A DNA stretch of 64,000 nucleotides from Monocercomonoides exilis PA203 (lineage: Eukaryota > Protista > Preaxostyla), in contig LSRY02000031.1 in the NCBI GenBank assembly GCA_001643675.2, positions 186,001 to 250,000 of the forward strand, in the 5' to 3' direction. The position numbers and the translations under genes are program-made. The notes beneath the pieces were generated by a model. That model worked only from the letters and a program-made list of their open reading frames with translations, did no database searches and was not told where the DNA came from. Positions 1 through 45,805 of this stretch are shown one piece after another. Numbering within the stretch: the stretch's first letter is position 1; each line of letters starts with the position of its first letter.

Positions 1-2300
1 TGATGAATTCAAACTGAGCTTAAAAGATCGTAATGTGGTTTGATATTCTTTCTGATTAACTTTTTATCAACTGTTCAAACATATTTAAATATTTCTTTTT
101 CAAGTGCACAGCATGTAAAAGCATGTGAAACCTTTGCAAATAGAGAAAGGGCATATCATCACTTTGGAGAAGCTGCAATCAACTCCAAAAAGGCAATGTT
201 TGCCACTACGATCTCAACATAATGTTTGATTTTTTTGTTCAAATCTATCACTTCATAGATAATAAACATCCAACAAATAAGGATTTAACCCTTAGCAAAA
301 TTGCATTTGAAGTGGTAAATAATAATTTGTTTATTGGATTTTCTCCTGTTTTTCTCAGCTCATCAGATAAAAAAATGTCCCATCGTTTGTATTAGTGCCC
401 AAATTCAACATTTGATTCAATATGTGGAATTACAGGAAGAAGAGACTCCTCATCAATCAAATTTCACAAATGCAAGTTGCTTAAGCAGAACTCAATTCAG
501 AGATTTTTCCTTAGAACAAAAATTGGCATGGATAATAAAAGCTTTTCAGTTAATACACACAACAACCAAGTTTGCAACACAAGTTTTAAATTAATGGACA
601 CATTCATTTTATTGGTTGGTATTTGTGACATATCTTTACCTTAAATCTTCCTGCAGTTTCCTGAACGATTTCATAACTTCTTTAATAAAAGAGTCTCGGT
701 TTCATCCTCATTCAAAGAGAGAAGACATATTCCCCTATTAAACTGAAAAATCTATTTCAAAAATCATTCTTCAAACAAATGATTCTAAGGTAACTAATTT
801 ATTAACAAAAATAAGAAATAAACCAATTGCAATAATGATGGACAGCGAAAAAATTGGAAACAAAAATTACACAGTTGTTGGAGTTGTGCCATTATCTTTT
901 AATTCTGTTCCTTTGTTCTTCAATTTGTTTGAAGGCTGCTCAACTGAAAAAGATTACTTCGAACTTGGTCAGACTTTGTTGATTGAGTTTGGAAAAATTG
1001 GTTCAATTATCTGATGTTTTTGTTTTGATGGATTGAAATTGCAGGTTCAAGCACTCACATAATTGTGCCCATCTTTAAACCAGTTACCAATGAAACATGC
1101 TGACAGTCTGTCATTGTTTAATCCTATTTTCGTTCCTTGCTTGAATCATCTGGTGAATTTGATCGTCAGTCATGCGTTTCAAGATTATAAATTCTTGAAC
1201 AATGTGAGAGAAATGCTCGTAAATTTCAACACCGCATGGTATTTAATAGTCAATCGAAAAATATTGGTTCGGAAATGTCCGACTTTTATCCGAGCAAGGT
1301 GGTTGTGTTTATTTCAAATATGCAATTACATAAGGACAAACATTCAAAGCGTTCTTTTGAGCAAGTTGCTGAATGAAGGAAATATTAAAGCTGCTGGAAT
1401 AACAGAGTTTTTGCTATTTCTGATTAACTATATGCATCTCCAATTCGAAAAAGACTGCACAAAGCTATCTTTTGTATTTCCTATTTTATTGAATGCAATG
1501 AGCTTATTCTTCTATTATTCAACATTGAATATTTTTCAACAGAAAGATTGGCACAATGCAATAACAAACATTATCATTCTGCTTTTCAACTGCACATTTT
1601 CTGGAGAAAGAGGCAGTTTTTTTGCCTTTGTTTATTCCCTTTTCCAAATTTGAGTGGGAAAATATCGAAAAGGTTTGTTCACAAATTGCGAAATAATATT
1701 TTCTGAAATTTCGAAGCACCAAAGCATAATAAAGGAAAATTTATCGAATATTCCATCTTCATCAAATATGATTGAATCATTGGTCAAATCATTTCCATCT
1801 TCAAGTTATTCTCAGCCAACTTCCTCGTCATCAACGATCCCATTTCAATTATCTTCAACTCAAAAACATTCTTCTTCTTCTCTATTATCCTCTCACATTC
1901 AACAACAAATGTCTCCACTGCTCATTTCTTGTTCAACTTATATTTTATCAAATTCAATTCCGTCTATATCTTCATCTTCACAGCCTAACTCAACTGCTCC
2001 AAATTTAACTCATTTTGACATTCTTCATGTCAAAGCAGCAATGGAAAGATTTCAGAATCGATTAAGTTTACGCCCACAACAATTGTATTCTTCATCAACA
2101 TTGATTTGCCCAAGCAAAACCGACTTTTCAAAAATAGGAAATTGCTCAGAAATAATGAAATTTGTTTGTGAAATTATTGATCATATTGAAAAAACCGAAA
2201 AAGAAATTGCAAAAGAAGATGAAAGCGAAAGTGATGGATATTATGAAGATTTGGAATATAATATGGAAGAATAAGAATTCGAAAGTGTCGAATATTTTTC
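1..2300 (+). pseudogene. hAT-superfamily transposase, 5' part (decayed; stops and frameshifts); interrupted at 2300 by a Merlin-type element
   Basis: Across frames: BED-like KCTAC...HH (~100-165), first catalytic Asp context IAIMMDS (~825-846), second Asp CFDG (~1020-1032), hAT CxxH motif VPCLNHLVNLIV (~1132-1167), and CPTFIRARW resembling the hAT (P)TRW motif (~1276-1302). ORFs 334..594, 1063..1653 and 1654..2274 are pieces of it. Confidence 0.75.
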
Positions 2301-2471
2301 GGCATAAGTGTAAAAAAACGCCTGCTTCAGTTTTATGATTTTCTTAATTTCAACAAAATTATCATAAATAACATTAAAAAACAACACTTTTGGGTGGAGC
2401 AGTTTTATGATATTTCAACATAAATTTCATCCAAAAATTTTTTGTGATCAATCCCTTAATTAAAAATTTTC
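2301..2471 (+). repeat. Left TIR of outer Merlin-type element
   Basis: Reverse complement of 11879-12049; contains the subterminal motif CAGTTTTATGAT twice (~2328, ~2400). Confidence 0.95.
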
Positions 2472-3033
2472 TTGTTCATTTTCTGTTTTTAGTGCGAAAG
2501 CGGAAGAATCTCAGCTTGATTGTTGCAGCCAATAATGCATTTTTTGCGATGTCATAAATGAAGTTAGAATTTGCACTAATTTTATTTCTTTAAATCTGTT
2601 ATTCAATAAAAATTTCGCTATCACTTATTAATCAATAACAATTCATAATATTTAATTGAAAGAAGTTTCTCTCAATGAAAGCCAATGTCACAGAAGATCT
2701 GATGATTATGAAATACTCATATTTCCAATTTTATTAGAGAAATCAGTTATTTATGTATTATTTATTTTTTCAAATTGAAATGCTTTCCATTTGAAATGAA
2801 GGCTATCATTATTGTTTTTTTATTGATTTTGCTAAATAAGACATAATTGTTAGATAACGATTATTATTCATTTTGTTTTTGTCAAATTGTCTCAAATAAT
2901 AAAAATTGTGAATGAAAATACAAAAAATGTGCAGTATTCACGTGATTTATTTTTTGAGGGCTCGTTTCATCAAAATGAAAAGAACGAAAAACTTCAAAAT
3001 GAATAAATGCCGACGGAAGATGTTTATTAATTG

Positions 3034-4200
3034 TTAAAGAAGCTGCTCGTAATAAACTTGAAATGCGGTAACAATCTCGATGTGTTCCCAATTCCACAAC
3101 ATATCAAATTTGATGGTTAAGAAGCCAAATATTGAATCGGATCCATAAAAGTTTTCGCTTCTATTTTCATTAATCTCCAATAATTTCTGAATAATGCATG
3201 AACTTATAGAATATGAAGATGAAGTGGAAGAAGAGGAAGAAAAAGAAGAAGAAACAGAAGGAGAAGGAGAAGAAGAAGAAAAGGAAGAGGAAAAAGAAGA
3301 AGGAGCAATTGGAACAGCAGAAGAGGAAGAATAAAAGATGGAAGACGTGTTAACTTCTGTTTTTTCAGAGAGCTGTGATTGAGCTGAGAGATTTGCATTG
3401 GCAAGAATTGATTCAAAAGACAAGGAAGTTTGCGTGGGCGCTGCTTTGACAGGAAAAACAGGACGAGAAGAAGGAAGCTTTGAAAAGGGAATGGAAGCAT
3501 TTTGAACTGAAGAAGAAGAAGATGATGATGATGATAGCGATATTGTTGTTGAAGGACACATCAAAGAACCCATGAAGCGCGAGAAAAATGCCTGACACGG
3601 TGAATGCACAGGTGTTGCAGTTGAAGAAACATCAATTGGCTTCCCAGTCGATTCTGCAAGCGCTTCAGAGCATTCAAGTGTCTGCATTTGGTTCTGTTTC
3701 CTTTGCCTCACATCTTCATCCTCCTCCACACCTTCTTCCTTCTTCTTCTTCTTCTTCTTCTTCTTCTTCTTCTTCTTCTTCTTCTTCTTCTTCTTCCTAT
3801 TATTCTTCCTATTATTCTTTTTCTTCTCTTTCTCTTTCTCCTTCTCCTTCTCCTTCTCCTTCTCCTTCTCCTTCTCCCCATCACCTGCCTTTTGAGACGC
3901 CGATGATTGCCTCATCACCTCCTGCGCATGTTGTATCATCAGCATCGCCTGGTTTGTCTGATTGACAGCTGTTTTGAATGTGAATAGAACAACCACAAAA
4001 ACACGGGCAAGAACAAGAGCAATGTGGAGAACAACAAAAATGGAGGTGGAAGATCTGAAGGGGTTGTTGTGTGTTTGGTGGTGGGTGGATGAAAGGAGAG
4101 AAGAATTCACAATGGAAAAAGAAGAGCAAGAGGAGGAGGAAGAAGAAGGAGGAGGAGGAGGATTAAATTGTAGTTGTCTCGACAGATGAACTTTTAACAA
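3034..4200 (-). CDS. Low-complexity Ser/Lys/Glu-rich ORF, probable captured host-gene fragment inside the outer element
   Basis: 388-aa ORF with poly-S, (EK)n and poly-K tracts like host genes elsewhere in the window; no recognisable domain; upstream ORFs 4194..4409 and 4422..4790 may be decayed continuation. Confidence 0.4.
   Translation of the reverse strand: MLKVHLSRQLQFNPPPPPSSSSSSCSSFSIVNSSLLSSTHHQTHNNPFRSSTSIFVVLHIALVLARVFVVVLFTFKTAVNQTNQAMLMIQHAQEVMRQSSASQKAGDGEKEKEKEKEKEKEKEKEKKKNNRKNNRKKKKKKKKKKKKKKKKKKKEEGVEEDEDVRQRKQNQMQTLECSEALAESTGKPIDVSSTATPVHSPCQAFFSRFMGSLMCPSTTISLSSSSSSSSSVQNASIPFSKLPSSRPVFPVKAAPTQTSLSFESILANANLSAQSQLSEKTEVNTSSIFYSSSSAVPIAPSSFSSSFSSSSPSPSVSSSFSSSSSTSSSYSISSCIIQKLLEINENRSENFYGSDSIFGFLTIKFDMLWNWEHIEIVTAFQVYYEQLL
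3731..3878. repeat. (TTC)n and (TTCTCC)n microsatellite tract
   Basis: Directly visible tandem triplet/hexamer repeats encoding poly-K and (EK)n on the minus strand. Confidence 0.9.
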
Positions 4201-4891
4201 AGAAAAAGTTTTTTGTTGAACAACATGTTTATTTTGAACCCAATTGTTCTCGGGTTTAATCCTGTGCTTTTTTTCATTTGAAAAAGCTCATCTGTTTTTT
4301 TCGCTGTTTCTTTTTTCTTTGTTATTTCTCTCAAAGCACTTTTTTTCTTCTTCACATTCATAAATCTTGTAAATAAGATACGCAGTTTCAACAATTTGTA
4401 TCTCTTCATCTGGTAAAAGTTTCAATCGAGTTCTGTGCAGGGATCGAAATGGACGCCTTTTTGCTCCAATGCATAGGTCGAGATGGATGGTGGATGAAGA
4501 GTGTCAAATACATCAAGCTCGATGTGTATGGTTGACATCTTTAAAGAAGAAGATAATGAATGAAGAAGATTTGTGGTGGGAGGACGATATTGAAGATAAG
4601 AAATGGGAAAAGAAAATTTTGTTTGTTGAATAAAAGCCAGATATTGCGATAGGCTGAGTGTGGAGATTAGAGGAAAGCTGATCAATTGGAAAGAAGCGAA
4701 CGAATAATTAGATTTTATATGAGGTGAAAAAGCATATTGATGGCAAAAAAATGCGTTGATTTGTTGCTTCGCTTTGATGATGAAAACCATGCAATGAGGA
4801 GCGAGAAAAGAACAGGAAATAGTTGTGGAGAATTGAAAAAAAATGATTCAGCAAATGAATTTAAATAATGTATATTGCATGTAGATACTTT

Positions 4892-5780
4892 TTATAAATT
4901 TGATACACTGCATACAGTGATTTCCGTGACAGCTTTTCTAAAGGGAATTATTTGTGTCTGAACAAATGTTGAACCAATAAGTGTGAGGAAGGCATCTTGG
5001 AGAAGGGAAATGAAGCCAGTGAGGGCATACTCGACGGCTGCACACGGAATTTGTTGAGGTCTGCCACAGACATCAACATCACTTCCACCATTTGAGACTA
5101 TTTTGTTCTGGGCGATGAGGGGGAGCCAGCCATTGAAAGTTTCATTGTCTGCTTGTCCATTATTCCACAATCTTTGTGTTGGAGTTGTTGATCCACACTG
5201 ATTGAATGGTGATTGGGTGTTACTGCTTCCATTGAAGAACACATCATTCCCTCTGCCATTTGTTGCGGAATTACCATCGAAGAAGCAGAATGTGATGAAT
5301 TTCATACTATTCATCCAGGAATAAGTTCCATCAAAGAATATTCCTGTTCCACCGTAAGTGGAAGAAGAAGTTAATTTGTGATTATCAAATTGACACTCAT
5401 TATTTGAAAACTGACTTGGTTTATTAATTGGTGGATTTGCAAATGTTAATGATCCCGCAGCATCACCACCAGAATTAGCAATGCACTTGCATTTGGTGAG
5501 CAGGAATAAGAGCATTTTCTGGCATATCATACACATGAAAATACCAACCAGTTCCATAAATGCCCTTAATATTACAACCTCCCACTCTATTATCTGAGAA
5601 TGAATAAACAGAAGATGATTGTCGACCATCAATGCAAATTGCACCTCCATGCAACGCCGAACAACCTGTTGAATTTGATTTTGATTTATTCTCATTTTGT
5701 TAACTGCAACAGCATAAAGCTCAACCTGCAGCATCATAATAACAATAATAAAATTTTTGAATTATTTTCTTTGAATATGT
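4892..5780 (-). pseudogene. Fragment of GGA-repeat beta-helix (Pmp-like) surface protein gene; cargo of outer element
   Basis: Motifs SGGDAAG, YGGTGIF, FCFFDGNSATNGRGNDVFF and VSNGGSDVDVCG...PC shared with the 7262..8548 family member; frameshift near the 5' end (GGAICI in another frame); hydrophobic N-terminal stretch; truncated at 3' end. Confidence 0.7.
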
Positions 5781-6510
5781 TTTTCAAATCTATTTTATTA
5801 TTGGTTTCTTTTTTTTCCCCATAATTAAATTTCTTCATAATCATTTGAAAAGATAACAATCAAAGCTTTTTTGCAGGTTGTTTTCGGAACAACATTTTAA
5901 TGTTTGTATTAATTTTTCGTTAATTAATTTTTCAAAGCTAAATTGAGACTCTCAGCTTGTTCAACGTTCCTTATTGTTAGTGACTTTATCTCTTCAAAAA
6001 TACCATTTGAACAATCTGAAAAAGCATCAAAAAACATATCGTTTATAACAATCTAACTTATGAGCATCGTTAGTATTCATAGAATCAATTTATTCACACG
6101 AAGGTTGAATTTCCATTAAACGATGCTTTATCTTAAAAAACATTGACTGATAAAAATAAGAAAGAATATTCAAGGTTAAGACTTTTTATTGCTTCGTTCA
6201 ATACTCGCGTTAATTGTTCACTATGATGCACTGTGTTACTCTTTCATAGAAAAATTTCATTTCTTCGAAATCCCAATTGCACTTGTAAAGGTTATTTCTT
6301 CTCGCATGCAATACTCTTTTGCAATGGAAACCCGAAAATAATCAAATACAAGAAAAATGACTAAAACACTCGAGTGGAAAATTCTTATCTCATGTTAAAT
6401 GCGAACAAATGATATTACTTTCAAAAGTCATCTACTCAATATTCATTATTAAAATCATAATATATGAAACTGCATGTGCAACTTTTTCTTTTCATTCATT
6501 AATTAATATT

Positions 6511-6754
6511 TCAATTATCCAAAGTTGATTTTCTGAAAAATTCAAAATTTGTCAGATCATTCAGATTCATTTCGAAATAATTGATCAGAAAACTACAAAA
6601 AACGTGACATGATGAAAGTGTAATAGGTTTGTCTTTTAATCCAATGCTCTTTGATTTAATATGGCTTCGCAGAATTTTTTTCATTTTAGTCGATAAAACT
6701 TTTTTCTTTTCTTTCAAGTATCTTTTTTTCGCCTGAAAATCTTTTATTTCACAA
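6511..6754 (-). CDS. Displaced C-terminal segment of the Merlin transposase (in frame with 9163..11066 once the inner element is removed)
   Basis: Excising 6763-9162 plus one TSD gives ATG GAA GCT GAT CGA TTT TGT GAA ATA AAA GAT TTT CAG GCG AAA AAA AGA TAC TTG AAA..., reading MEADRFCEIKDFQAKKRYLKEKKKVLSTK and running into ORF 6511..6717. Confidence 0.88.
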
Positions 6755-6762
6755 AATCGATC

Positions 6763-9162
6763 GGCATAGGTCTAAATTGTACCAGTAGAGAATTTGACGT
6801 TTTTATACAAAATTTCACTGTATTATAAATCAACGTAATTAATTTACTCTATTGTATCGAAAAATTTTAAGAAATATTGCAATGAAAAACAAAAATTAAA
6901 AATGTTGATCGGTCCCATAAAAATATTTATTATATTTTCATTTTAACTTTTTGGAGTGTTATGGAGAGATTTCGTTGTTATTGACAAATTAAATCCTTAT
7001 ATAAAAATTATTTCTTGCGTAACTTAAATTAATTTATGTTGACATATGTTATATTTTTCATTATCAAATTTTGTTGGAAATATGATTCTTGCTCGATAAT
7101 ATTGAATTTTTGTCTTAAGCAAAACATCCAATGAATTGAGTTCTTTATTTTATCGTGAGTGGAATGGATCAAAAACGACTGATACATCATCTTCTACAAC
7201 TGATGGAGTTTCCAGTGGAGGGGTAATTAATAAGCATAATCTAGCATAGGGAACACTTTGAGTGAAATTTTGTTTATTGAACAATTGCAATGCATATGCT
7301 TATGGCGGAGGCATTATGTGTCGTTCGATCTATTCAATTATTATTGAGAACAATTCATTCAATTCTTGTTCTGCTCAAAAGTATTATGGAGGAGGAATGT
7401 ATGCTGAATCAATTTCGTCATGTTCCAGGATCAGTGGTTGCGAATTCCAGAATTGTGAAGCAAACGACTGGGGAGGGGGGCTTTATTTTCAAAGTTTCAA
7501 CGCTTTGGGGACTGAATGCTTTGAAACAGAAAGTGGGAAAGGAGAGAGTGCTTATGTGTTTGAGTGCTCATTCACTTCGTGTGCGCTCACAGCTTCATAT
7601 GGTGGGGGGATTGGCTGTCAAAATGTTCCAACTGCATTTAATATGCGGAGTGTCCAATTTATTTCGTGTTCTGCAGCATTATATGGCGGAGGATTGTATT
7701 TTTATCCATATCAATCAACACCTCCAAGCAACAACCTTTATTGCTATTTCTTCTTCTTCCACGATTGCAGTTGCACAACCACTTCCACTCCATATGGCCA
7801 CGATGTTTGCTTTCAAGACTATTATAATATTTTTAAAGAATCGAATAACCCGTTTTATGAATCATACACAACGAATACAAATGAGAAGAGAATTTGTTAT
7901 GCATTTTCGCAATCGACCAGTTATGTGTATCAACATACAGAAAAAAAGGAATGGTTGAAGGAAGGGATGAAGGATCGGTATGTTGGGGTGGGTGGAAGTG
8001 ACTCGAGCAATTTGTGTGGGATGAGTGAGGCATCGCCGTGCAAGACTGTGGGGCATGCGGTGGGGTCGAGCATGGGGCAGCTGAGCTCGACAATCACAGT
8101 GCTTGGTGGGAGACATGTGAGTGAAGGGGCAACGATCAGTGTTGGGGAAAAAAAGATTTCAGTTGAAGGGAAAGGGAAGGCAGTGAGTGTGATTGGGACG
8201 AATTCTCTTTTTTCGCCTGCAACTACTCTGTTAAGCATATATTCTGGCCAACTGGAGATGGGGCATGTGCAGATCGATCAAATAACAACAAGAGATTCTT
8301 TACCGAATGTGTTTGTGGTATTTGATGGGAGCGGGACTCTTTCACTGGAGGATGTTTTGATCTTGTCAAGTGTTTATGGAGGGAGAAAAATCTCGTCATC
8401 TGTGTTTGAAGCGGCTCTGAAGCAGCTGACTATGATTGATGTGGAGATAGAAAATATGAAAATATCCAAAGCTTTTTTTCTGAGCCATCATCAGCAGGAT
8501 CAACATCTGGAGAGAGTATGTTTGCGAATGGAATCATTAAAAATGTAAATCAGACAATAGAAGGAGATGGAGTGGTGATGGCAAAGAGTGTGAAAAGAGG
8601 AGAGGCATTTGTGGTGCGAAACACAACGATTGAGGAATGTGAGTGTGTGAATGGAAATAGAAGGGGGATCAAGGTTGAGTTTGCAACAGATTCAAGCAAA
8701 TTTTGCACTGGAACATACACATCGCAAGATGGAGTTCAATGAGGGTTTGAGGATAAATTTTTCTCAAATAAAATGGAAATGCTATTCAAATTATTTTTAT
8801 AAAGAATGTTTTTTTTCAATGCATTCTTTTCAAAATGTCCAGAATGTTTATATTTAAAAAAAGAAAACAAAACATAAACTTATCCATTCTTTTTGATTAG
8901 TAGTCATGTTAAAAAAATAAAGCAAGGCTTAGACAAAAGCTAACATTCAAAATATTGCTCTTATACGTCAAAAAACAAAAAAAAACAAAAAATTAAAAAT
9001 ATTTTTATGGGGCCGATCAACATTTTTAATTTTTGTTTTTCATTGCAATATTTCTTAAATTTTTTCGATACAATAGAGTAAATTAATTACGTTGATTTAT
9101 AATACAGTGAAATTTTGTATAAAAACGTCAAATTCGCTACTGGTACAATTTAGACCTATGCC
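6763..9162. mobile_element. Non-autonomous Pack-type (Merlin-like) element, 2400 bp, carrying a beta-helix surface-protein gene fragment
   Basis: TIRs 6763-6928 and 8997-9162 (166 bp, ~3 mismatches, begin GGCATAGGTC); perfect 8-bp TSD AATCGATC at 6755-6762 and 9163-9170; no transposase inside. Confidence 0.93.
7262..8742 (+). pseudogene. GGA-repeat parallel beta-helix (Pmp-like), Cys-rich surface protein fragment; cargo of inner element
   Basis: Repeated FxxCxAxxxGG(G/A)(I/L/M) motifs, YGHDVCF, and RYVGVGGSDSSNLCGMSEASPCKTV; in-frame stops upstream (~7230-7250), frameshift at ~8480 into ORF 8518..8742, truncated at both ends. Confidence 0.78.
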
Positions 9163-11066
9163 AATCGATCAGCTTCCATGCGAAGAACTTTAATACATGG
9201 AAAATCTGTTTGCTTTATGAATCGTCCACTTTTCGATCTGAGCCTTGATACTGCTTTTCTTTTTAAATTCTTGCTACTGCTTGGGATGATAGTTTCTGAA
9301 TCAGAAATTATTTTCGAGAACTTCTTTCTTGAATATAAGTTTGTTGTTCCACAAGTTTTTTCATCTTCATCATCCCTCTCCTCCTTCTCCATCTCCTTCT
9401 CTTCCTTCTCCATCTCCTTCTCTTCCTTCTCCATCTCCTTCTCTTCCTTCTCCATCTCCTTCTCTTCCTTCTCCATCTCCTTCTCTTCCTTCTCCATCTC
9501 CTTCTCTTCCTTCTCCATCTCCTTCTCTTCCTTCTCCATCTCCTTCTCTTCCTTCTCCATCTCCTTCTCTTCCTTCTCCATCTCCTTCTCTTCCTTCTCC
9601 ATCTCCTTCTCTTCCTTCTCCATCTCCTTCTCTTCCTTCTCCATCTCCTTCTCTTCCTTCTCCATCTCCTTCTCTTCCTTCTCCATCTCCTTCTCTTCCT
9701 TCTCCATCTCCTTCTCTTCCTTCTCCATCTCCTTCTCTTCCTTCTCCATCTCCTTCTCTTCCTTCTCCATCTCCTTCTCTTCCTTCTCCATCTCCTGCTC
9801 CTTTTGCTTATTTTCTTTTTTTCTTTCCTCTTTTTCAAACGTTTTATTTTCCTTTCTTTTCGTTATCTCAACTGTTTTTGTTTCGTTTTCTATTTTTGCT
9901 GGATCATCTTCACTGTCAAATTCATCAATCATTCTGATTTTTCTGTTTTCGCGTGCTCTTTCTTTTTTCAGTTTTGATGATTCTTTTCTGTTCCGAATAA
10001 AATTATCTAAATCTTCTTCATGAAAAAGTTCAATAACGTTTTCTGTTTCTTTTTCATTTTTTTTCATCATATATATTGATTGCTGTAATATTTTTTCTTT
10101 CTCAATCACACTTCTTATTTCCATTTCACATGATTCATATGTCAACAAATATGAATTCAATTCATTTCTATTGATTAAGCACATATCACAAATTAACTTT
10201 GCAATTGATTTTTTTGTGTTAAACCTATATTGAAATTCCAGTGCATATTCCTTTGTCTGTTCAAGCACTCTACCACGCTTTCTCATGTGGCATTTAATAT
10301 GAGACCACATACACTCGATGGTTTGAGTGTGAACATTTTTATCTTCAGGTTTAACAAAATTTAATGAATGATTCACACAATCGTGTTTGTATCCTGCAAT
10401 TTTTATACCTTGATAAGAAGACCACATATCAGAGTAGACTATTGCGCTTTTATCAATATTCTTTTCTATGAAATACATGAGTGTTTCCTCAGTTCTGTTG
10501 GCAACAAATTCGACTTTGAAGTGCTGAGGTGCTCCTTCCATCTTTCTTTCACACACACCCCACAGCCACTGTTGATCCTGAATTCTTCCTACTCCATTTT
10601 TTCTTTTGTGCACAAGTGTCTCGTCGATTTCTACGATTCGATTTTTTCCAATTTTTTCAAAGCATTCCATCTCAATGAAACCGCAAATTCTTCTAATTTT
10701 TTGATTGAATTTTAAAACTGTTTTATTAGAAAGATTTGTTTCATGTGTCACTTCGCTAATTGAATGCTTAGACCAGAAATGAAATAGCAGGCAAATGAAT
10801 TGAAATGGTGAAAATCTGAACTCTGAAAAGATAGTGAAATGATTCCAGTTGAGTTTTTTTCCGCATTTTGAACATTTGTAATAAAATTCATCCCGTTTTC
10901 CACCATCAACAAAATGCATTTGGCTTCGACAGCAATGACAATTGGAGTATTTTTTGATGAAATTGAAACTGTTCAATATCTTTATTGCAAAATCGCTGTT
11001 CCCATTTGACCGTTGAATAAATTCACATAAAGAAATTGTTTCGAAAATGTTCTTATAATCCTCCAT
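9156..11066 (-). CDS. Merlin/IS1595-family (ISXO2-like) DDE transposase, C-terminally truncated by the inner insertion
   Basis: N-terminal Zn ribbon (CHCC...YKCSKCGKK), HTH-like segment, catalytic motifs [15 protein letters not shown] and NHS..FV....[14 protein letters not shown]; the last codons and stop come from the inner TIR. Confidence 0.92.
9376..9796. repeat. Near-perfect 21-bp tandem minisatellite (~20 copies) encoding EMEKEEK heptads in the transposase
   Basis: Unit CTCCATCTCCTTCTCTTCCTT repeated without visible variation except at the ends. Confidence 0.97.
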
Positions 11067-11878
11067 CCTTTGGAACTTTAAAAGTGATTAGATCTTTGTT
11101 TTGAAAACGTTTATTTTGAATGATTGATCGATAACTTTATTAAAAAACTCGATAACATGCACATATGCATTCGATCAAAATTCAATGTTTCAAAATGAAT
11201 TGATTTGATTGTTCAACATTCTAAATAAATATAAGTGAAATTTTTGTATAAGAACATTTATAATTTTCTAAACAAAATTGAACATATTTTTATGAATTGT
11301 TTTCAAGGAAACTGAAAAGAGATAATCGACAATTTAAAAACTAAAGATTGAATCATATTTCTCGAAATATTCAAATGTGGTTATTCGTTTTTTGATATGT
11401 TTTATTTCAAACGAAAGAAATTGAAATGTTCAAAACTTTGTGCATATAAAGTTTTCCTTGCACAGAGAATGCTAATAGAAAAATCAACATATTCAAATTG
11501 ATTACTGTCAAACTTTGAAACATTCAAAAGCATGTTTTTTTCACAATAAAAACAATCTCGTATGTTTTATCGTGTCAAGAGTGGAATTCTCAAGTTCGAA
11601 TAAAATATTAATCAAATATCTAAATTCAACAATGATAAGACCTGTAGCTCTTGTTCATTTGAAATAAACAAATTTGTACTAAAATCTATCAAAGATTTGT
11701 TTTTGCAGTTAGAAAGAATATGAAGAATTTTATGACTATTCATGAAAAAGTCGAAATAAAAGTCAAATATTCTTCAGAACAATTATCTTAGAAGAGTTTT
11801 CATTCAGTTGAGCTGTATTACATAAAGATTGATTTTCAATTATTGCAACAAAACATTTCAAGTGAAAAAGATGATTAT

Positions 11879-12049
11879 GAAAATTTTTAATTAAGGGATT
11901 GATCACAAAAAATTTTTTGATGAAATTTATGTTGAAATATCATAAAACTGCTCCACCCAAAAGTGTTGTTTTTTAATGTTATTTATGATAATTTTGTTGA
12001 AATTAAGAAAATCATAAAACTGAAGCAGGCGTTTTTTTACACTTATGCC
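11879..12049 (-). repeat. Right TIR of outer Merlin-type element
   Basis: Ends ...TTTTTTTACACTTATGCC, followed by TSD TATTTTTC. Confidence 0.95.
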
Positions 12050-12057
12050 TATTTTTC

Positions 12058-12709
12058 TTCAAATGATAAAGATTATTTTGTAAACAATTAAGAATCATTT
12101 TCAGATAAAGATAACGTCTCAACATACCGCACTAGAAATACTGCAGGAGCGAAAGATGAAAAAAAACTTGCTGGAAACAAAGAAGAAAATGATGAAGAAA
12201 AGGAAATCTGTAATGAAGATAAAATGATAAGACGAGAGCGTAAAAGATCATTTGCAAATGAAGATGATATTCTCTGCTTTGGAAACTTTTCGTCAAGGAA
12301 AAGAATATTGCTATGTGATTCAAAAAATAAAAATGAAGCATTGGAGCAAATTCATTAAGCCATTTTTGATGATTGGTATCCTCGACTAATTGTTGCCTTC
12401 AACGAAGCAACAAATATCATTTTGCAAGGAATGGATGATATTCTTATTTCAGGATGCAAAGCACTTTTTCGAAGAAGTTTGCTTGTTCAGGATGATTCTG
12501 TTATTGAGGACGATCCATATGTCTAATACGAAGAACTGGCTCTGAAAGGTAATGTGGAAACTGTTTATTCTAATTTTGCCTTCCATTTAATTGCTTCCAC
12601 ATGCAGTGAAGCCTTTTGCGAACGCATGTTTTCTAAGGCAAGAAGGATTGTTGGAGATTGAAGACATTCTCTTTCATTGATTTCTTTGAACACACTTATG
12701 CGTTTGTGA
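12058..12709 (+). pseudogene. hAT transposase, 3' part including C-terminal dimerisation domain
   Basis: HLIASTCSEAFCERMFSKARRIVGD*RHSLSLISLNTLMRL at ~12583-12709 matches the hAT C-terminal S..CER.FS signature (catalytic Glu); continues the frame interrupted at 2300. Confidence 0.8.
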
Positions 12710-17435: not shown

Positions 17436-17707
17436 ATGGGGGAAAATATGAGACTTCAAGCTTTTTCAAAGAAAAATAATGCACTTTTTATTGACTTTTA
17501 GTGAATAAAAAATTTGAAATAAATGTGTGTATTTTTTGAAATTCATGTGAGGTCACAAAACATTTTGTTATCACATCAATGATGTTTGTATGCAGTAATG
17601 AAAATCAAATTAATTTTGAAATCTGAGAAAGCGATATAAAGTTATGAGCGAAACAATTTTTTCTTGCTTTGTGCATAAAAAGCTTGTAAGTCAGTATTTT
17701 CCCCCAT
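17436..17707. mobile_element. ~270-bp MITE-like dispersed repeat with short TIRs (ATGGGGGAAAATA...)
   Basis: CATATGGGGGAAAATATGAGACTTCAAGCTTTTT ... AAAAAGCTTGTAAGTCAGTATTTTCCCCCATATG; homologous to repeats at 45114-45805. Confidence 0.75.
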
Positions 17708-18769: not shown

Positions 18770-19694
18770 TCAGGAATATAATGTATCATTTTTTTGAAAA
18801 ATATCAACAAAACATGGTATAAGATTCCTTTTAACATGCCACATGGATAAGCAATCAGCAATGAATATTTTTTCAAACTCAGTGTTTTGGAAAAAAAACC
18901 CTCTTAAACAACTCCACAACCCTGCAACGGTATTGGAACATGCACCTGTTTCTGGATCTTTGAAGTTCCTTTTATGACAGACTGAAATAGGTTCACAGCC
19001 AATATCTTTCAGACAATTGTAGCTTTTCCATTCATCACTAATTATTGTTGTGACTGTTAATTTCCTTTCTTTAATAATAGGGATCAATGTTTCTTTTTTC
19101 CTGTCTGGCATGATGATGACAAAATTTGTTCCAACTCCTCCTCCTTCCTTCCTTTCAACTTCTCCGAAAATCCACAGCAAATCCTTCTTTCTTCCTCTTC
19201 CATATTTCCTTCTCCTCCAAACAGCCTCATCAATTTTGACGCATTTTCCTGGTCCTCCTAATTTCTGCATCGTTTCGTTCCAAATTTGTGTACACACAAC
19301 TCTTTCACAGCTTGTTCAATAACCAACAGTTGGTTATGAAACACCCGTCATAAAATGAATTTGTTTCAATCCAATTCCAATCAAACAGTACAATTGAATC
19401 TGCATTATAATATTTATCGGAAGTTTCATTTTTGTAAATACGGAATTTTTAAATATTGAGGATTTTTTTCGGCAAGTTTGACACCAAAGATACTTGCATC
19501 CTTCTGTTTCCTCCCTGATTCTCCTTTTGCTTTTGCTTATAGTGCAATTATTATCAGCGAACTATTAATAACGTTGGAAAACCCAATTCCACGTTTCTTC
19601 TTTTTCAAAGGAAAATCGGATTCAATCGAAATACTGTTTGACTATTTTTTTCCTCTTCAGATCTTGCCATAAATCTCTTTTGATCATAAACCAT
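18770..19694 (-). pseudogene. Second, divergent Merlin/IS1595-type transposase (decayed)
   Basis: GGPGKCVKIDEAVWRRRKYGRGR, WIFGEVER, DRKKETLIPII, IISDEWKSY, VCHKRNFKDPETGACSNTVAGLWS (catalytic E replaced by A); upstream YLWCQTCRKK Zn-ribbon half separated by stops; 5' limit approximate. Confidence 0.85.
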
Positions 19695-23994: not shown

Positions 23995-26900
23995 ATGAAA
24001 AAGAAACTTCTAATTCAAACTCAAAAAAGAGCATTGAATTGGATTAGAAGTGTTTGCTCTGTATACTTTGATTTGGACGTAGGGCAATCGATTGGATGGA
24101 CCTTTGGAAAGCGTCTTTCGAAGCGGGAGGCACAACAAATGTGTGATGTGTTTTTCTGAGAAATTTTCGATTTTAATTGTTAATTGACGTTTGAAATATA
24201 TCGCCGTAACATCTGTTTAAAAGATCTTCACTTGCAGTTCCAGAATCTTCGTGTGTGTGCTTGAGGGATCACATTATTCATTTCACGGTTGAATCGACTG
24301 CAGTTTTTGAAGATGGGCCACAGAATGTCACTCTGTACTGTACTTCTTTATTTCGTCAAGAACCAGATGAGATGAATAGGCGTGGTTTTTACCAAGCAGC
24401 TCTGGTGTTTATTTCTCATCTTCCTTTATTTGATTTAATGGAAGAAATGGCTCGGATTTCGGGTCCAATATTTCACAACATGCGTAAACCAATAGGGGAA
24501 CTTTTATTTGATGAAATTTGCATGTGGCCATTTCCGTGCGCTGGAAAGTCAATTTCTGTTGAGCTTCTTGGAATAAATTTGTACAGTTGTATTCCTATGA
24601 GAGCACCTTTATTTCCTGTATCTTTTTCAGAATTTTATCATCCAATGGGCAAACTAGAATCTGGGGAGAAGGACCAGGAAATTGGGAAAATATCAAAAAA
24701 AGCAACTCAATCTTTGGAATGTTCATCGAACATGAATTCACAATTAATATCAATGACACCAACAAAAAGAAGAAATGGCATGACAACTTCATCAAATTCT
24801 GTTTCTTTGACTCATCGGCCAGCAAGCACTGAGATGAAGTGCGAATGCATTTCTGCTTATTTGCCTCGATGCAACTCAAAATGTGACTTTCTCTGTGAAA
24901 CTGAAAAGGCAAAATTGACTTCCGTTCAGTTGGACAAAGAACACAACAACACGCAACAGGAACAGGATTCATCGCCTATGGTTTCATGTGACAGTCAAAA
25001 CGCCGTTCAAATAAAGACAGATAACCACATTGAAAGTCAGAAAGAAATGAACGAATTGCCTTGTGCATCTAATGACAGTGATTCTCCTCCGCTCACAGAT
25101 GAGCCATCGCCTCTTCCTCTGTTTTCTGTTCTCCGGCGGGACTTTGACAGCTCCATCAGCTTGTCTTTTCTGCACCCGTCGTTTGCCGATCTGCTGTGTT
25201 CTGTCTCGCTTCCGCTGCGCAAACCAGCCGATGTGTCGCAGTCAACAACAATCACCCCGCTCAACTCGCTCTCTTCCCTCGTGCCATTTCTGACTTCGCT
25301 GCGGTTCTTGTGGCAGCTGGCAGTGACTGGGCAGCCACTCGGCGTGTGTTCTTCGTCGCCGCTGCTGTCTGCCAGAGCAGTCGTTGCAATGGTCACACTC
25401 ATTGCGCCTGTGCATTATGCATTGCCATGGGCGATGTATTACTCGGTGGATCTGCTGAATGGGAGAGAGGAGGAGGAAGAGGAAGAAGAGGAGGAAGAAG
25501 AAGAAGAAGATGATGATGATGATGATGATGAACAAGACAAAGGAAAAGAAGGAGAAGAAACCAACATGAATGAAACAGATGATATCAACTTGTCAATTTC
25601 AGATACAAATTCCTCTTTGAACAATAGCACGGAATTCAATAAATCTCAAAGCCATTCAAAAGCCAAGAAATTAGCCAAGCACAAATCGCTAGCTGAGCAG
25701 AGAGACAGAAAAGAAGTGAAATATCCAAATTTGTTTGGCTTTACTTCGCCTCTCATTCTGCAAATGATACAAAACTACAACAAAACTGTTGCAGACAGCA
25801 AACAAATAGCACAAAATGTTTCTTCTTCTTCTTCTTCACCAGCATTGTCGATTTCTTCAAGTCCTTCTCTTTCATCGTTGTCTTCTTCTCTGTCTTCTCT
25901 GTCTTCTTCCTCCTCCTCCTCAACTACTACTGCTACTTCTTCTTCTTCTTCTTCAGCCTCCACATATTCTTCTTCAAATTCTTCTTCTTCCTCTTCTTCC
26001 TCCTCTTCCTCTTCTTCTCCTCTCCTTCATCCGTATCTTCCTTCCTCCTCCCTCTCTTCACAAAACGAGAAATATTCCTTTCTTTTTGTGGGCAATTGGC
26101 AGCGTCTGCCAACAAACATCGAATACAAACAGACAAACACCCCTCCCTTTCTCCAGATGATTCAACCTCATCCTTCCTCTTCTTCTTTGTCTTCTTCTTT
26201 ATCTTCTGTTTCCTCTTATTCTTCCTCTTCATTGTGTTCATCATCATCATCGTTATCTTCTTCTTCTTCTTCTTCTTCAACATCTCCTTTACCTCCTCCT
26301 TATTCATCATCTTCTTCCTCCACATTCTCTCCTTCTAAACTTTCTCTTCCTTCTTCTTCCTCCTCCTCCTCTTCCTCCTCTTCCTCCTCCTCTTCTTCTT
26401 CTTCTTCTTTCAATTCTGATCCCTTTTCCTCTTCTTCTGCCATTTTCTCTCCAACTCTTCTTCCTTCTTCTCCAACACACACACAAAACACTCCAATTTG
26501 GGTGGCAGACGAAGAAGATGAAGGAGCATTAAGAGGAGGAGAAAGAGAAGAAAGAGGAGAAAGAGGAGAAAGAGAAGGAGGAGGAAGAAGAGAAGAAGGA
26601 GAAAGAGAAAGAGAAATACCTAATTCTTCTTCCATTCTTTCTTATTCTCAGTCCATTTCCTCTTCTTTTTCTTCTTCTTTTTCTCCTTCTCTTCGACGTT
26701 TTTCGAATGAATCGAATTTTTCTTCTGCTTCTTTTTCGCGGAGGAGCCATTCAGAAGCAGAAGTTGTGTTAATTTCAGGCCAAATGGATGATTCTCTATC
26801 GAATGGGATGTTTTTAGAGGGAAAGGGAAATGAAGAAGGAGAAAAAGAAGAGAAAGAAGAAGGAGAAGGAGAAGAGAAAGGAGGAAAGGAGGAAAACAAT

Positions 26901-29900
26901 GAAGGTTTGAAGAATTATGAGGAAGAGAAAGAAATTGAGGAGAAGAAGAAAGAAGAGGAAGAATATGAAGAAATAAAAGCAAAAGGAAAATGTGATGCTG
27001 AAGAAGGAAAAGAAGATTGCTTGTGGAATGAAAACACAAAATTTTCAAATCGAACAGAAAACAAAGAAAATAAAGAGACAAACAATAAACTTCTAATAAA
27101 TTCGGATGAAGAAGTTGAATCATCTTCACAAACACTCAAAACTTCATTAAACTCTTCTTTCTCATCTGATCTTTCTATCTATGAGACAGCTATGATCAGC
27201 AACAAACAGCAAAGTTTTTCTCCTTCTTCTTCTCCTTCCAAAACATCCAATATTCTTCTTCCAACTTCATCTTCTCCAAAATATTTCCCTTCTTCTCCTG
27301 AAAAGATGCTTCCATTTGCTTCAACTGACAACAATTCTTTGAATTTGCCAACTTATTCTTCATTTGCCTCTGAAAATTCACCTTCTCATTCTTCTTCTTT
27401 ATCTTCTTCTTCCTCTTCCTCTTCCTCTTCTCTTTATTCTAAACAACCTATCAAACCATCATCTTCTGCTTCTTCGTTGAATTCTTTGCTTTCTTATCTT
27501 CCTTCTTTTCCTTCTTCTTGTTCTTCTTCTTCCTCTTCCTCTTCCTCTTCTTCCAATTATCTTCCAATCAAACAAAACATAACATCTTCTCCTTCTTCTC
27601 AAAAGCAGATGAAATCTCATCTTTTATCACCTTCTCTTTCTCCTTCAATTTCTTCTTCTTCTTCTTCTTCTTCTTCTTCTTCTTCAGTTCAATCAACACA
27701 TCACAGAATAATCTCTTCTTCTTCCCCTTCCTCTTCTCCTTCTTCCTCCAAATTGTTTTCTTTCCCTTCTTTGTCATCTTTCACTTCTTCCTCCTCTTCC
27801 TCTTCTCCTGCTCCGTCTTTTTCAATTCCTTTTTCATCTTCTTCATTTTCTTCCTCTTCTTCTTCCTCTTCCTCTCCTTTTCTTCCTCCTCCTCCTCTTC
27901 ATCTTCTCCTCGAAGCAACTCCATCCAACCTCATCCACACATTCCCTGCTTCTTTGTTTTCTTCTTGTTTGTCTTCTTCCTCTTTCTCTTCTTCTTCTTC
28001 TTCCATTTCTTCTTCCTCTTCCTCCTCTTCTTCTTCTTCTCTTCTCAAATCTCATCAAAATCTTGTTCCTTCTTCTTCTTTGTTGGCTTCTCATATCCAC
28101 AAAGATTGCATCGACTTAATGAAAACACCTTCATTCAAGAAAATGTCAGCAATCAGTCCCAGTTCAACTTCCGTTTCTTCTTCTGTTCCACATTCTCCTT
28201 CTTTCTCTTTCTCTTCTTCTTCTTCCTCATCCTCTTCTTCCTCATTGCCTTCTTCCTCCTTATCCTCCTCCTCCTCTTCTCTTTCCTCTTCCTCTTCCTC
28301 TTCCTCCCTCTCTTTCTCCTCCACCCTCACCAAAGACCAGCTCCGCTCTCAGCATCTCTCTCTCCATCGCCCAGGGATGCCCTGGAAACAGGGAATTGTG
28401 TCACACATCCGCCCTCTCCTTTCGGAAGACAAGGTTTTGACACGCAAATGCACTGAGCTGATCAGAAGATCGCTCAAACAGACTGCTGCTTATCAGAAGG
28501 AATGGAACTGTGGCAGTTGGAGTGTGCTGGTGAATAAGATGATGACTCATTCACACAAAGAGAAGGAGGAGAAGAACGGGAAATGCAAGGGGGATAAAAT
28601 TGATGGGAAGGAAGAAGAAGGCAATGGTGGTGCGTTTTCTGCTCAAACAAGTCCAAAATTAATGAATGAATTGAATTCAAAGCAGAATGGCGAGATGAAT
28701 GGTGGAATGTCATCTATTGATAATAAGAATAAACATGGGACAAATGATAATAATAATAATAATAATGTTATGAAAGCAAAAGTGAATACAGAGAAAGAAG
28801 AAGCAGAAGAAGAAGATGACGATGATGATGAGCAAGAAGAACAAGAGAAAGAAGAAGAAGACAATAATTACGCGGCCATCACCCCCAAATCCCCACCATC
28901 TGACTCATCCACTCTCTTTGACATCCTCAAGACAATCACCCACAACGAAGAAGAGCCTTCCTTCTCTTCTGATTGCTTGCTTCTTTCAGCTGATCAGCTG
29001 ACTGAAGCTCCTCTTATCACAGTGGGCGATGTGTGTGATGTGATCAGAGACGCTTTTTCGAAGCTCACAGCTGATTTCCTCGCTCCGCTGATGTTTTTCA
29101 TCCATCGCAATAGACAGAAGCTGTTGGAGCAGACGCTGAAGAGAGAAGAAGAGTGGAAGAGGAACGAAGAGAGAGAAAACGAGAGGCAGATGAGAAAGAT
29201 GACGAGGAAGAGGGAGAAGGAAATTAAGCAGAGAATGAGGGAGAGCAAGATTGCTCGCAGAAAACAGAGAAAAATGAGTGAAGAAGCACAAAATGACAGA
29301 AACTTGTCTATTTCCAAGCAAAACAACAAACCAGATGGATTGCTGACACTTCAGCAGCCAATCAAAATATCCTCCTCTTTCTCTTCTCTCATTCGCTCTA
29401 ATTCTTATCTGAGCTCCTGCAGTTGCTCTCAGCTTCCAGAAAATTCAATTTCTGATTCAAATAAAACTGAAACAAAAGCAGCAAAAGCGATAAAAGAAAC
29501 AAATTCAATGAAAATGACACAAAATTTGAGAGATGAAAGAAATTCTGTTTCTTCACAGAAGAACACACTTTCTGATTCGACTGCTGAGAAAAAGGAAGAA
29601 TTTACTGCTCCGACAAAGAAAATGAGGTTTCCGTTTTTCAGAATGAGACGATTGTCAAAACTGAATAAGGAAAAAGTTGAGAAGAAAAATGAAGAAAACG
29701 AGAAAAAGGAGAAAAAAGAGAAAATTGAAAGAATTGAAAGAAATGACAGCGATGTGTCTGCGTCTGAAAATGATGTTTATTCTTCTTCTTTCACTTCGTC
29801 TTTCTCTTCTGATTCTGATTCTTCATTGTCATCATTTTCGAGCGTATCATCATCATCCTCTTATTCCTCCTCTTCTTCTTCTTTATCCTCCTCCTCATCT

Positions 29901-30926
29901 TCTTCTTCTTCCACTTCCACTTTATTCTTCTCCAAAAATCCCTTTGCTCCTCCCTCTCCTCGCCCTCCTTTTTCCACTGCTTCTTTCCTTTCTTTTGTGC
30001 GCGAACAAGAAAGTCGCATTAATTTCCCTTGCAAATCAGCAGATGACCTTGTCAAATTGTATTCAGAATTTTTATCTTCTCCTTTGGGAGTGTTTTTTGT
30101 GAACACGCAAATTGCGATGGGCGAGGCGGAGGTAGCTATTCATGCACAACAATATCAGCAGCGCTGGCTGAAGAGTTTGAAGGAGCACAGGAGAAGGAGG
30201 AAGGAGAAGAGAGAGAGAAGAGAGAAGAGAAGAGAAGAGAAGATGGAAAGAGAAAGAGAGGAGAAAGAAGAGGGTGGAAAGAAGAATGATTATGAATATG
30301 TGAATAAAAAAGATGTATTTGAAGAAATGAAAGGAAAGCAGACAGCACCCAAACAGAAGAAAATAGAAGTGGCTGTGATGGACATTTATCTCTCTCTGCG
30401 CAACTTGATTTCACAAACACAGCAATTGATAACAATTGAAGAAGAAAACAGCAAAAGAAAGGAAGAGAACGAGGAGAAGAAGATGAAAAAGAAGAAAAAG
30501 AAGACAATAAAGAAGAATCAATCCAGCGATTCCTCATCTCCTCACTTACTCCCTCACACTTCCTCTGATCCATCTTCAGAATGGATTCCATTAAAAACAG
30601 AAAATCCGAACTTGCAGCCACTTCTTCGGCCAGGCAGCTTCCACCCTTCTTCTCCTTTTTTGCCGTCGGCTGTTCCTCTTTCTGTGCTTCCCAGCGTAAT
30701 TTCAGCAGACTCTCCTGTTTCTCTTTCACCTGAATTCTTTTCAACCGCGTCGCTGTATTTAACCTCGTGTGAAGGGAATGTCAAAACACTCAAAGAGAAA
30801 AGAAGGTTTTACGTGGAGTGCATTGAGGAGGTTGTGAAGGAGCTGCCTGAAGATATGCAGCTGGCGGTAGCAAAGGAGATAGAAAGGCTGAAAGAAGAAG
30901 GGAGAGAAAAGGGGAAAGGAGATTGA
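23995..30926 (+). CDS. DENND6: DENND6/FAM116-like DENN-domain Rab GEF with very large Ser/Glu low-complexity insertions (exon 23995-24140, intron 24141-24223, exon 24224-30926)
   Basis: WIRSVCSVYFDLDVGQ, LAVPESSCVCLRD, LFRQEPDEMNRRGFYQAALVFISHLP, LWQLAVTGQPL and IRDAFSKLTADFLAPL match DENND6 uDENN/cDENN/dDENN signatures recalled from memory. Confidence 0.8.
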
Positions 30927-45113: not shown

Positions 45114-45805
45114 ATGGGTGAAAATACGGACTTACAAGCTTTTTTTGCACAAAGCACGAGAAAATTGCTTCACTCATAACTTTATTTCACTTTCTCAGAT
45201 TTTGAAATATATTTGATTTTCATATCCGTAAACAGGCATTGTTGAAATCAAAACATAAAGTTATTAACAATTAACGAATGTCTTAAAATGGACCCATTCA
45301 TATTGTGTTTTTTACACTCAAAAAGTCAATGAAATGTGCATCATTTATCAATAAAAATGCCAGAAGTGAAATATCAAGCCCAAATATCAATTCATTTTTT
45401 ATAAAAGTTTTTGAATAAATTCTTTCTATAAAATAATGCTTTCCTTGTAATACAAATTTGGGAAACTTATTTTTTTTTGAACCTCTATTTGATATTCAGC
45501 TCAAAATGAAACTTCAACAAAATTATTCAAAATAAGGTTCAATATTTCAGTTCAGGTATCATCATTGAAAAATAATAAACTTTTCATTAACTTTTTTTTT
45601 GTCAAAAAACACAATAAAAAATGGATTCATTTTTTGAAATTCGTGAAATGGCACAATATTTGATATTTTGATTTCAACCATTCCTGCATACGGAAATGAA
45701 AATCAAATTTATTTTGAGATCTTGGAAAGCGAATCAAAGTTATGAGTGAAACAATGATTCAATGCCTTGTGCAAAAAAAGCTTGAAAGTCAATATTTTCC
45801 CCCAT
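45114..45805. mobile_element. Foldback arrangement of two ~270-bp repeat units of the 17436-17707 family (or one MITE with long TIRs)
   Basis: ATGGGTGAAAATACGGACTTACAAGCTTTTTTTGCACAAAGCA... at 45114 is inverted relative to ...TGCCTTGTGCAAAAAAAGCTTGAAAGTCAATATTTTCCCCCAT ending at 45805; inverted similarity extends at least 150 bp. Confidence 0.75.

Follow-up and report, generated by a model that had tools for sequence, protein, structure and literature searches.

Inherited fragments of giant host genes in nested Merlin transposons of Monocercomonoides exilis and their probable overwriting by gene conversion

Background

Whether Merlin transposons take up host genes, and what becomes of the genes they carry, is the question raised by a 64,000-nucleotide stretch of Monocercomonoides exilis PA203 contig LSRY02000031.1 (positions 186,001 to 250,000; hereafter the window), in which one element lies inside another. 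The initial annotation proposed that Merlin-family elements may capture, duplicate and shuffle fragments of a beta-helix surface-protein family. According to the Merlin account of Lopes et al. 2021 (PMC8101967), Monocercomonoides holds more than 100 Merlin copies in at least 7 families. These share with the present elements the DDE_Tnp_IS1595 domain, the DDE motif, 8-bp target site duplications (TSDs) and the organism itself, but their terminal inverted repeats (TIRs) are given as 23–29 bp (extendable), compared with 180–370 bp here. Cargo, non-autonomous copies and captured genes are not mentioned in the Merlin section of that paper or under the terms searched in it, and the present elements differ from its description in having cargo as a fixed part.

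Structure of the nested elements

The outer element (2301–12049 of the window) is of Merlin type and bears a transposase. The inner element (6763–9162), a 2.4-kb Merlin of another family without a transposase, interrupts the outer transposase gene in its 3′ tail. As first described, both are TIR-bounded and flanked by exact 8-mers (Table 1). The outer TIRs are 97% complementary over 182 nt, with the terminus GGCATAAGT; the inner pair match at 95–96% over ~182 nt, with the terminus GGCATAGGT. Short-read contigs, 2016 data included, matched the unique stretch of the inner element with 0 differences, and contained the empty-site joint.

Table 1 Features of the two nested elements (positions in the window)
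Feature	Position	Strand	Description
Left TSD, outer element	2293-2300		exact 8-mer TATTTTTC
Left TIR, outer element	2301-2482	+	182 bp
Cargo A: low-complexity ORF, 388 aa	3034-4200	-	host-derived by sequence match
Spacer	4200-4891		common to outer-family copies (84-98%) and more distant loci (70%)
Cargo B: GG-repeat giant-gene fragment	4892-5737	-	match to second host family
Replacement tract within cargo B	5200-5400	-	43 mismatches/200 bp against C38 copy
Outer transposase ORF, severed 3′ tail	6511-6762	-	separated by inner insertion
Left TSD, inner element	6755-6762		exact 8-mer AATCGATC
Left TIR, inner element	6763-6944	+	~182 nt
Cargo C: internal, 5′-truncated host-gene piece	about 7150-8720	+	open frame 7262-8548, frameshift after
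Tract within cargo C	7400-8000	+	87-96% identical to host gene C41:721k (3121-aa frame)
Right TIR, inner element	8981-9162	-	~182 nt
Merlin/IS1595 transposase	9156-11066	-	PF12762 match; DDE residues
Right TSD, inner element	9163-9170		exact 8-mer AATCGATC
Right TIR, outer element	11868-12049	-	182 nt
Right TSD, outer element	12050-12057		exact 8-mer TATTTTTC

The ORF read from 11066 to 9156 on the minus strand matched PF12762 (DDE_Tnp_IS1595) above the Pfam cut-off (E 3e-17). Its catalytic triad is intact at D148, D213 and E251, which we take to be the three conserved Merlin/IS1595 blocks. Cys pairs are present at the N-terminus and an E/K-rich repeat lies near 9370–9800. The ORF now has 636 aa and terminates inside the inner TIR; without the inner insertion it would have 715 aa. 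Together with the GG at the start of both pairs of TIRs and the 8-bp TSDs, the transposase bears out the proposed Merlin identity, and the inner family is tied to Merlin by decayed Merlin transposases enclosed by inner-type TIR pairs on contigs C21 and C69. The elements are not Pack-MULEs in the strict sense, the transposase being IS1595-type rather than Mutator-type and the TSD 8 bp rather than 9–11 bp. A by-eye reading of the target ORF as hAT-like was not confirmed by Pfam.

Copies across the genome

Exact termini were sought genome-wide, giving 57 inner and 54 outer matches against 0 and 2 for reversed control patterns. These counts exceed chance, and both TIR families are multi-copy, so they are not confined to the window. 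Perfect 8-bp TSDs, within the 8–9 bp of Merlin, flank 16 of the 21 inner copies and, with those of the window and C38 counted, 11 of the 13 outer-type ones; the TSDs differ from copy to copy, showing that the cargo travelled with the element, as in Pack-TIRs. The outer copy on C38 is full-length (7372 bp), 96% identical, and has its own TSD and a clean empty site. Copies 99.5–99.9% identical in sequence sit at different loci, which suggests recent movement.

Duplication of host gene fragments, as originally proposed, was thus borne out by copies at dozens of loci. The proposal that elements grab new fragments repeatedly was not: within each TIR family the cargo is a single inherited one whose boundaries do not vary. 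The same beta-helix piece lies in every one of the 21 complete inner copies fetched, which are collinear end to end and have the same cargo boundaries, a length of ~2.4 kb and 65–77% identity; the cargo was therefore probably inherited from a few old captures. Independent captures are too few to support an enrichment for beta-helix genes, and other cargo lies in two outer-type copies. A 7.8-kb inner-type element has the same host breakpoint, a decayed transposase and ~5 kb of extra sequence resembling giant genes. Neither TIR family was represented by a cargo-free version among the copies examined.

Nearly all deletion derivatives examined have lost the transposase and retained the cargo. Such retention is not predicted by passive carriage, though these derivatives descend from few founders.

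Host origin of the cargo

Host gene families were found for cargo A, B and C when parental loci were sought, so that host fragments lie between the TIRs as in Pack-TIRs. There was no one unambiguous parental copy; cargo windows match different paralogues. The low-complexity ORF seen earlier in the outer element proved to be host-derived: the N-terminal part of cargo A, which has one hydrophobic helix, is 85% identical to host locus C13:1186721, a 2171-aa open frame, while a 50%-cluster library contained no match to its first 112 aa. Cargo B matches, at up to 76% aa identity, a second host family that has GG-repeat motifs and open frames of close to 3000 aa, with 1161 candidates. By these matches the outer element carries pieces of two unrelated host genes. 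Cargo A was also considered as a possible C-terminal end of the cargo B gene, but this was rejected because the parent on C13 is a frame of its own, lying 12 kb upstream from the closest member of the cargo B family.

The inner fragment, first placed at 7262–8742, is present with a refined extent (Table 1). On sequence comparison, cargo C corresponds to part of the N-terminal portion of giant host genes that resemble receptor kinases; this kinase link rests on two host genes, on C12 (2755 aa) and C53 (2556 aa), where a PF07714 kinase domain lies downstream of the cargo C region in the same strand and frame. An AF2 model of cargo C (residues 1–235 mostly at pLDDT >70) is predicted to be a right-handed parallel beta-helix. 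The fold was resolved by VIA-align (Z ~13, rmsd ~3 to tailspikes and lyases), Foldseek with the model gave no match at E 0.001, and Atlas neighbours were Chlam_PMP/Beta_helix. Pfam found no domain over the cargo sequences of both elements and the host piece. The annotation of both fragments as beta-helix genes therefore holds for the fold of the inner cargo, whereas cargo B belongs by sequence to the GG-repeat giant-gene family.

Mosaic tracts in the cargo

Five sister pairs of elements differed by 1–3% in their flanks and by 11–22% in their cargo (Fisher p 1e-10 to 1e-46). The cargo differences were clustered in tracts (0 of 2000 shuffles as clustered), and between sisters with flanks 97–98% alike, 31–59% of the cargo was replaced by tracts resembling host-like paralogues. 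Outside the cargo B tract, the window and C38 copies are 98% identical; window cargo C is closer to a host gene (84% identity) than to its best sibling element (73%). Tracts are tens to hundreds of bases long and ~25–30% diverged, can be common to sister copies by descent, and are confined to sequence with many paralogues, being essentially absent from the transposase and flanks. Per site, tract replacement was at least 12–36 times point substitution.

Trees of neighbouring cargo segments disagree (first versus third: 0 splits shared, 8 of 9 supported splits in conflict). A single element clade of cargos was rejected with p-AU 1.8e-44, a value that is only descriptive because mosaic sequences violate tree models. 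Left-flank and right-flank trees of the elements also conflict, which suggests that elements exchange sequence with each other too. Host paralogues are likewise mosaic, and host proteins are as patchy as the cargo. The host side of the analysis comprised two loci as DNA and, in the tree, proteins of which some may lie in unsampled elements or palindromes. The shuffling proposed at the outset is thus real as patchy exchange with paralogues, but transposons need not drive it because the same exchange makes host genes mosaic.

Decay of the cargo

The cargo reads as mostly broken, truncated and stop-bearing: 1–9 stops interrupt its frame in each of 20 of the 21 inner copies, some of them common to five copies that went on moving. 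An intact functional passenger gene, as in bacterial tIS elements, was accordingly not found. A recoded stop codon was rejected as an explanation, as all three stop types are present at scattered sites; stops were counted as X in sequence computations. Overall cargo dN/dS was 0.34, which was not taken as purifying selection on the cargo, the signal lying mainly within imported tracts (pS ~0.5, pN/pS 0.44). Weak selection may act on the cargo outside tracts, since pN/pS there was 0.63, where neutrality would give 0.93 (p 0.076).

Discussion

These Merlin elements probably hold inherited, passive and mostly broken cargo that is caught in family-wide gene conversion. Both move as whole units, TIR to TIR, making 8-bp TSDs, and the inner inserted into the outer transposase tail. 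An ancient ancestor of each family that bore a transposase would have acquired part of a giant host gene, probably via gap repair or template switching, and the outer family would additionally have acquired part of a second gene. Internal deletions have then, in outline, given 2.4–3.9-kb copies with the transposase gone and the cargo retained, presumably mobilised in trans. Ectopic gene conversion is the likely mechanism of the observed overwriting in tracts, because the cargo is homologous to >1000 segment-exchanging host paralogues; the non-homologous flanks appear to change through point mutation only. On this view the cargo would ride along passively, in most cases broken, and would owe its protein-like pattern of substitutions to import from its donors.

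One alternative, though an unlikely one, is a two-way conversion network in which Merlin elements, as mobile silent cassettes, bring receptor ectodomain segments to new loci, pass them on to expressed genes for receptor kinases and offer homology for rearrangement; if true, transposons help diversify the largest gene family of M. exilis. It is improbable that the elements are mobile silent cassettes donating segments to expressed receptor genes, with cargo kept for that role, like the pseudogene archives of mosaic VSG genes. Cargo does persist in two TIR families and most derivatives, exchange is fast and extends between elements, and background pN/pS is somewhat below neutral; but ~50 elements stand against >1000 host paralogues and are therefore a small share of the possible donors, stop codons common to several copies persist, and two outer-type copies hold other cargo.

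Rather improbable, too, is that tracts are a by-product of transposition, in which breaks at or inside elements are mended by template switching to host paralogues and conversion is faster in the cargo than in ordinary paralogues. Patchiness is equal in host proteins, and tracts keep to many-paralogue sequence, against which stand the high conversion-to-mutation ratio (12–36) and the publication of gap repair and template switching as Pack-TIR routes (PMC8277862). Pack-MULE-like behaviour, in which empty elements would each time capture another paralogue independently, is very improbable: cargos do not form one clade and different families carry different genes, but the 21 collinear copies, the sub-cargo replacement between 98%-identical sisters and the lack of a cargo-free version among the copies seen largely refute it within a family, while founding events still fit capture. 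Assembly or polishing artefacts in this repeated family are scarcely credible, for despite an ONT assembly with ten Pilon rounds (PMC8767320) and no single read contig across the whole nested region among the short-read contigs, 2016 and 2022 read contigs match 6936–7553 almost exactly and branch at the onset of the host-shared tract, sisters share tracts through descent, and ~25–30% divergence is probably too great for routine mis-mapping.

Like Pack-MULEs and animal Pack-TIRs (PMC5861414; Tan et al. 2021, PMC8277862), the elements carrying this inherited cargo are TIR elements with host gene fragments, cargo combined from more than one gene, spread to many copies through transposition and inherited old duplications. 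They differ in superfamily and in having cargo in transposase-bearing copies too; Pack cargo is usually low-copy, whereas the present cargo belongs to the host's largest gene family and undergoes rewriting tract by tract, and 'gene conversion' is absent from the text of Tan et al. (PMC8277862). Bacterial IS1595 tIS such as tISCpe8 and MTnSag1 (PMC5704250) have the same transposase family and passenger DNA between IRs beside the transposase, but their passengers are whole functional genes, e.g. for resistance, and not truncated, mostly broken eukaryotic pieces. A search joining 'Pack-TIR' and 'Merlin' found nothing, and no description of Merlin gene cargo was found in the literature searched, in agreement with the initial annotation; neither fixed host-gene cargo nor tract overwriting was found described for Merlin elements.

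Segmental gene conversion occurs in surface-antigen families, e.g. in trypanosome VSG mosaics. The present system resembles these in patchwork exchange among many paralogues and pseudogenes, and differs in that some participating copies lie in mobile elements. The giant receptor-like gene class overlaps the 35% of the genome that is unclassified repeat (PMC8767320), and no account of this family as a mosaic was found in the literature.

Conclusions

These elements extend gene capture to the Merlin superfamily, echoing the passenger-carrying bacterial IS1595 elements. They also give a warning: where transposon cargo shows a dN/dS below 1, the signal may have come in with donor sequence and is not necessarily a sign of function. 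Each element is a built-in experiment in which unique flanks date the split of copies and the cargo preserves the traces of exchange with the host gene family, and therefore allows a direct estimate of the exchange rate in the giant receptor-like family.

The two nested elements

The genome searched comprised 82.3 Mb in 101 contigs, with the window on contig C27. The initial annotation had described two nested, TIR-bounded elements with 8-bp TSDs, and this was borne out. All three catalytic residues (D148, D213 and E251) are present in the outer transposase, whose frame extends to 715 aa once the inner insertion is removed. The insertion point lies in the transposase tail, beyond an E/K-rich repeat, and the catalytic core is unaffected.

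Positions and principal characteristics of the nested elements, their transposase and their cargos in the window
Feature	Position	Strand	TIRs	TSD	Match
Outer element	2301-12049		182 bp, 97%	TATTTTTC	
Inner element	6763-9162		~182 bp	AATCGATC	
Transposase ORF	11066->9156	-			DDE_Tnp_IS1595, E 3e-17
Cargo A (outer; low-complexity ORF)	3034-4200				one close host match, contig C13, 85%, in a 2171-aa frame
Cargo B (outer; GG-repeat giant-gene fragment)	4892-5737				second host family, frames near 3000 aa, 1161 candidates
Cargo C (inner; beta-helix piece)	about 7150-8720				host open frames of 2000-4500 aa, 1875 candidates

The host site of the outer element (window 1654-2300 and 12058-12700) is a decayed reading frame with an end resembling a hAT C-terminal motif, a hAT identity unconfirmed by Pfam. 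Elsewhere in the window are another, distant Merlin transposase relic at 18770-19490 on the minus strand (PF12762, E 1.5e-11); a possible MITE at 45113-45806, formed by two 147-bp inverted repeats separated by about 700 bp and related to a third arm at 17559-17707; and two giant low-complexity ORFs of 2223 and 2770 aa (24255-30926 and 51996-60308), which gave no match to Pfam or to the cargos.

Copies across the genome

The elements move as units with fixed cargo boundaries, the inner having entered the outer, and derivatives have lost the transposase. Genome-wide, 54 outer and 57 inner termini were counted, compared with 2 and 0 for the reversed patterns. An outer copy on contig C38 (7372 bp, 96% identity over the full length) has a TSD of its own and a single AATCGATC at the position of the window's inner insertion, an empty site; the outer transposase is found at 95-98% identity in three further loci. 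The empty-site joint is present in read contigs, and the unique part of the inner element shows 0 differences from read contigs of 2016 and 2022 data, none of which spans the element; in both cases the reads may come from the source sample.

Complete inner-family copies number 21, are 2.3-2.45 kb long and are collinear from end to end at 65-77% identity; perfect 8-bp TSDs, different between copies, flank 16 of them. The transposase is absent from outer-type copies of 2.5-3.9 kb, three of which keep cargos A and B and six more a piece of the cargo B family. Two outer-type copies (C21 and C5) hold other low-complexity sequence as cargo. A 7.8-kb inner-type element on C21, with a perfect TSD and a decayed Merlin transposase at its end, shares its starting host breakpoint with the 2.4-kb family and contains about 5 kb of extra giant-gene-like sequence; the 2.4-kb family probably arose by deletion from an element of this kind.

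The TSDs of two near-identical inner-family copies in opposite orientation (L061, C9:702423-709270) are swapped, which marks an inversion of the intervening 2.2 kb. In place of a direct TSD, three copies (L074, C20:278131-280528; L020/L021; L025/L026, C91) have inverted flanks, a pattern that homogenisation between the ends would leave if it extended beyond the TIR. Derivatives L010-L015 (C46, C69, C8) have TIRs lengthened to ~370 bp, and concerted evolution of their two ends is suggested because these are 96-97% identical, compared with 85-90% between copies. The outer terminus occurs ten times on one strand at C47:1081050-1097265, with a period of ~1800 bp, in a tandem array containing one Merlin end. 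The apparent right end of an outer-family copy at C63:206786-246743 lies 40 kb from the left, reflecting either nested insertions or a mis-paired end.

Origin of the cargos

The cargo homologues are MONOS_ proteins of Monocercomonoides exilis. Cargo C is predicted to form a right-handed beta-helix, its Atlas neighbours belonging to Chlam_PMP/Beta_helix clusters, and it lacks the host frame's first 180 codons or more. A PF07714 kinase domain ends the cargo C frame in two host genes, in agreement with the statement that tyrosine-kinase genes are among the largest M. exilis families, overlapping the 35% unclassified repeat (PMC8767320). Because cargo A matches the C13 frame while cargo B belongs to another host family, the cargo of the outer element is chimeric.

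The first 79 residues of the protein P0119, named 'putative Atg16', match the cargo of element C8a without a difference, and the protein is probably a gene model fused over an insertion, or else a genuine chimera. Locus L084 (C42:178800-186300) is a near-perfect 7.5-kb palindrome (98%) of truncated beta-helix genes, in which neither inner- nor outer-type termini were found; many similar inverted pairs lie on C42, C25 and C80.

Patchwork replacement of the cargo

Tract-wise replacement is confined to sequence with many paralogues. In five sister pairs the flanks differ at 15-26 of ~774 sites, whereas the cargos differ at 158-318 of ~1450 (Fisher p 1e-10 to 1e-46), and the cargo differences are clustered (0/2000 shuffles). 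Under a two-state model, replaced tracts of 25-670 nt make up 31-59% of the cargo. The ratio of tract coverage to flank divergence is 12-36, a lower bound because tracts from near-identical donors cannot be seen. Comparison of the outer element with its C38 copy gives 98% identity except in one 200-bp cargo B tract and over a short part of the low-complexity ORF.

In a DNA-level comparison with two host loci, the window's cargo C matched a C41 host gene at 84%, with one stretch at 87-96%, compared with 73% for the best sibling element. The best MONOS proteins differ between 40-residue windows of various cargos, at up to 90-100%, and trees from adjacent cargo segments disagree. A single clade of all element cargos was rejected (p-AU 1.8e-44), a value qualified by mosaics, which break tree models, and by reference proteins, some of which may derive from unsampled elements. 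Left- and right-flank trees conflict for some copies, indicating that elements recombine among themselves. Patchiness is equally marked in host proteins, pointing to a process that runs through the whole family.

Coding signal of the cargo

Across 18 distinct copies, dN/dS was 0.34 in the cargo frame and ~0.9 in shifted frames. Stops fall within the cargo frame in 20/21 copies, and five that have one stop in common kept transposing. As pN/pS is lower inside tracts (0.44) than outside (0.63; neutral expectation 0.93, p 0.076) and stops are widespread, the coding signal is mostly imported, although weak selection on the cargo may also act. One RNA run, poor in M. exilis and with contigs that cannot prove absence, gave 0 contigs over the element-specific cargo start (6972-7305).

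Discussion

That the system is real is well supported. The elements agree with Merlin in every feature tested; Merlin was previously reported in M. exilis, with no mention of cargo (PMC8101967). Pack-TIRs work in the same way, although a single parent gene is absent here, and the elements do not belong to the Pack-MULEs. The layout resembles that of IS1595 tIS with passengers (PMC5704250), but the intact passenger of a tIS is lacking. A literature search that covered few subscription papers turned up neither Merlin elements that capture genes nor Pack cargo converted by its host family.

The observations are probably best read as mobile Merlin elements with inherited passive cargo, rewritten by ectopic gene conversion. 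By analogy with PMC8277862, host genes may have been captured through gap repair or template switching; copies lacking a transposase would be mobilised in trans, the tracts would arise by conversion, and the cargo would be a passenger. It is unlikely that the elements instead act as a donor archive, and marginally less likely still that transposition-linked repair is the main source of tracts. Repeated capture, or an artefact, has little to recommend it. The elements are Pack-type transposons in a superfamily for which the search gave no earlier example, and they preserve an unusually clear record of probable gene conversion by the largest of the host gene families.
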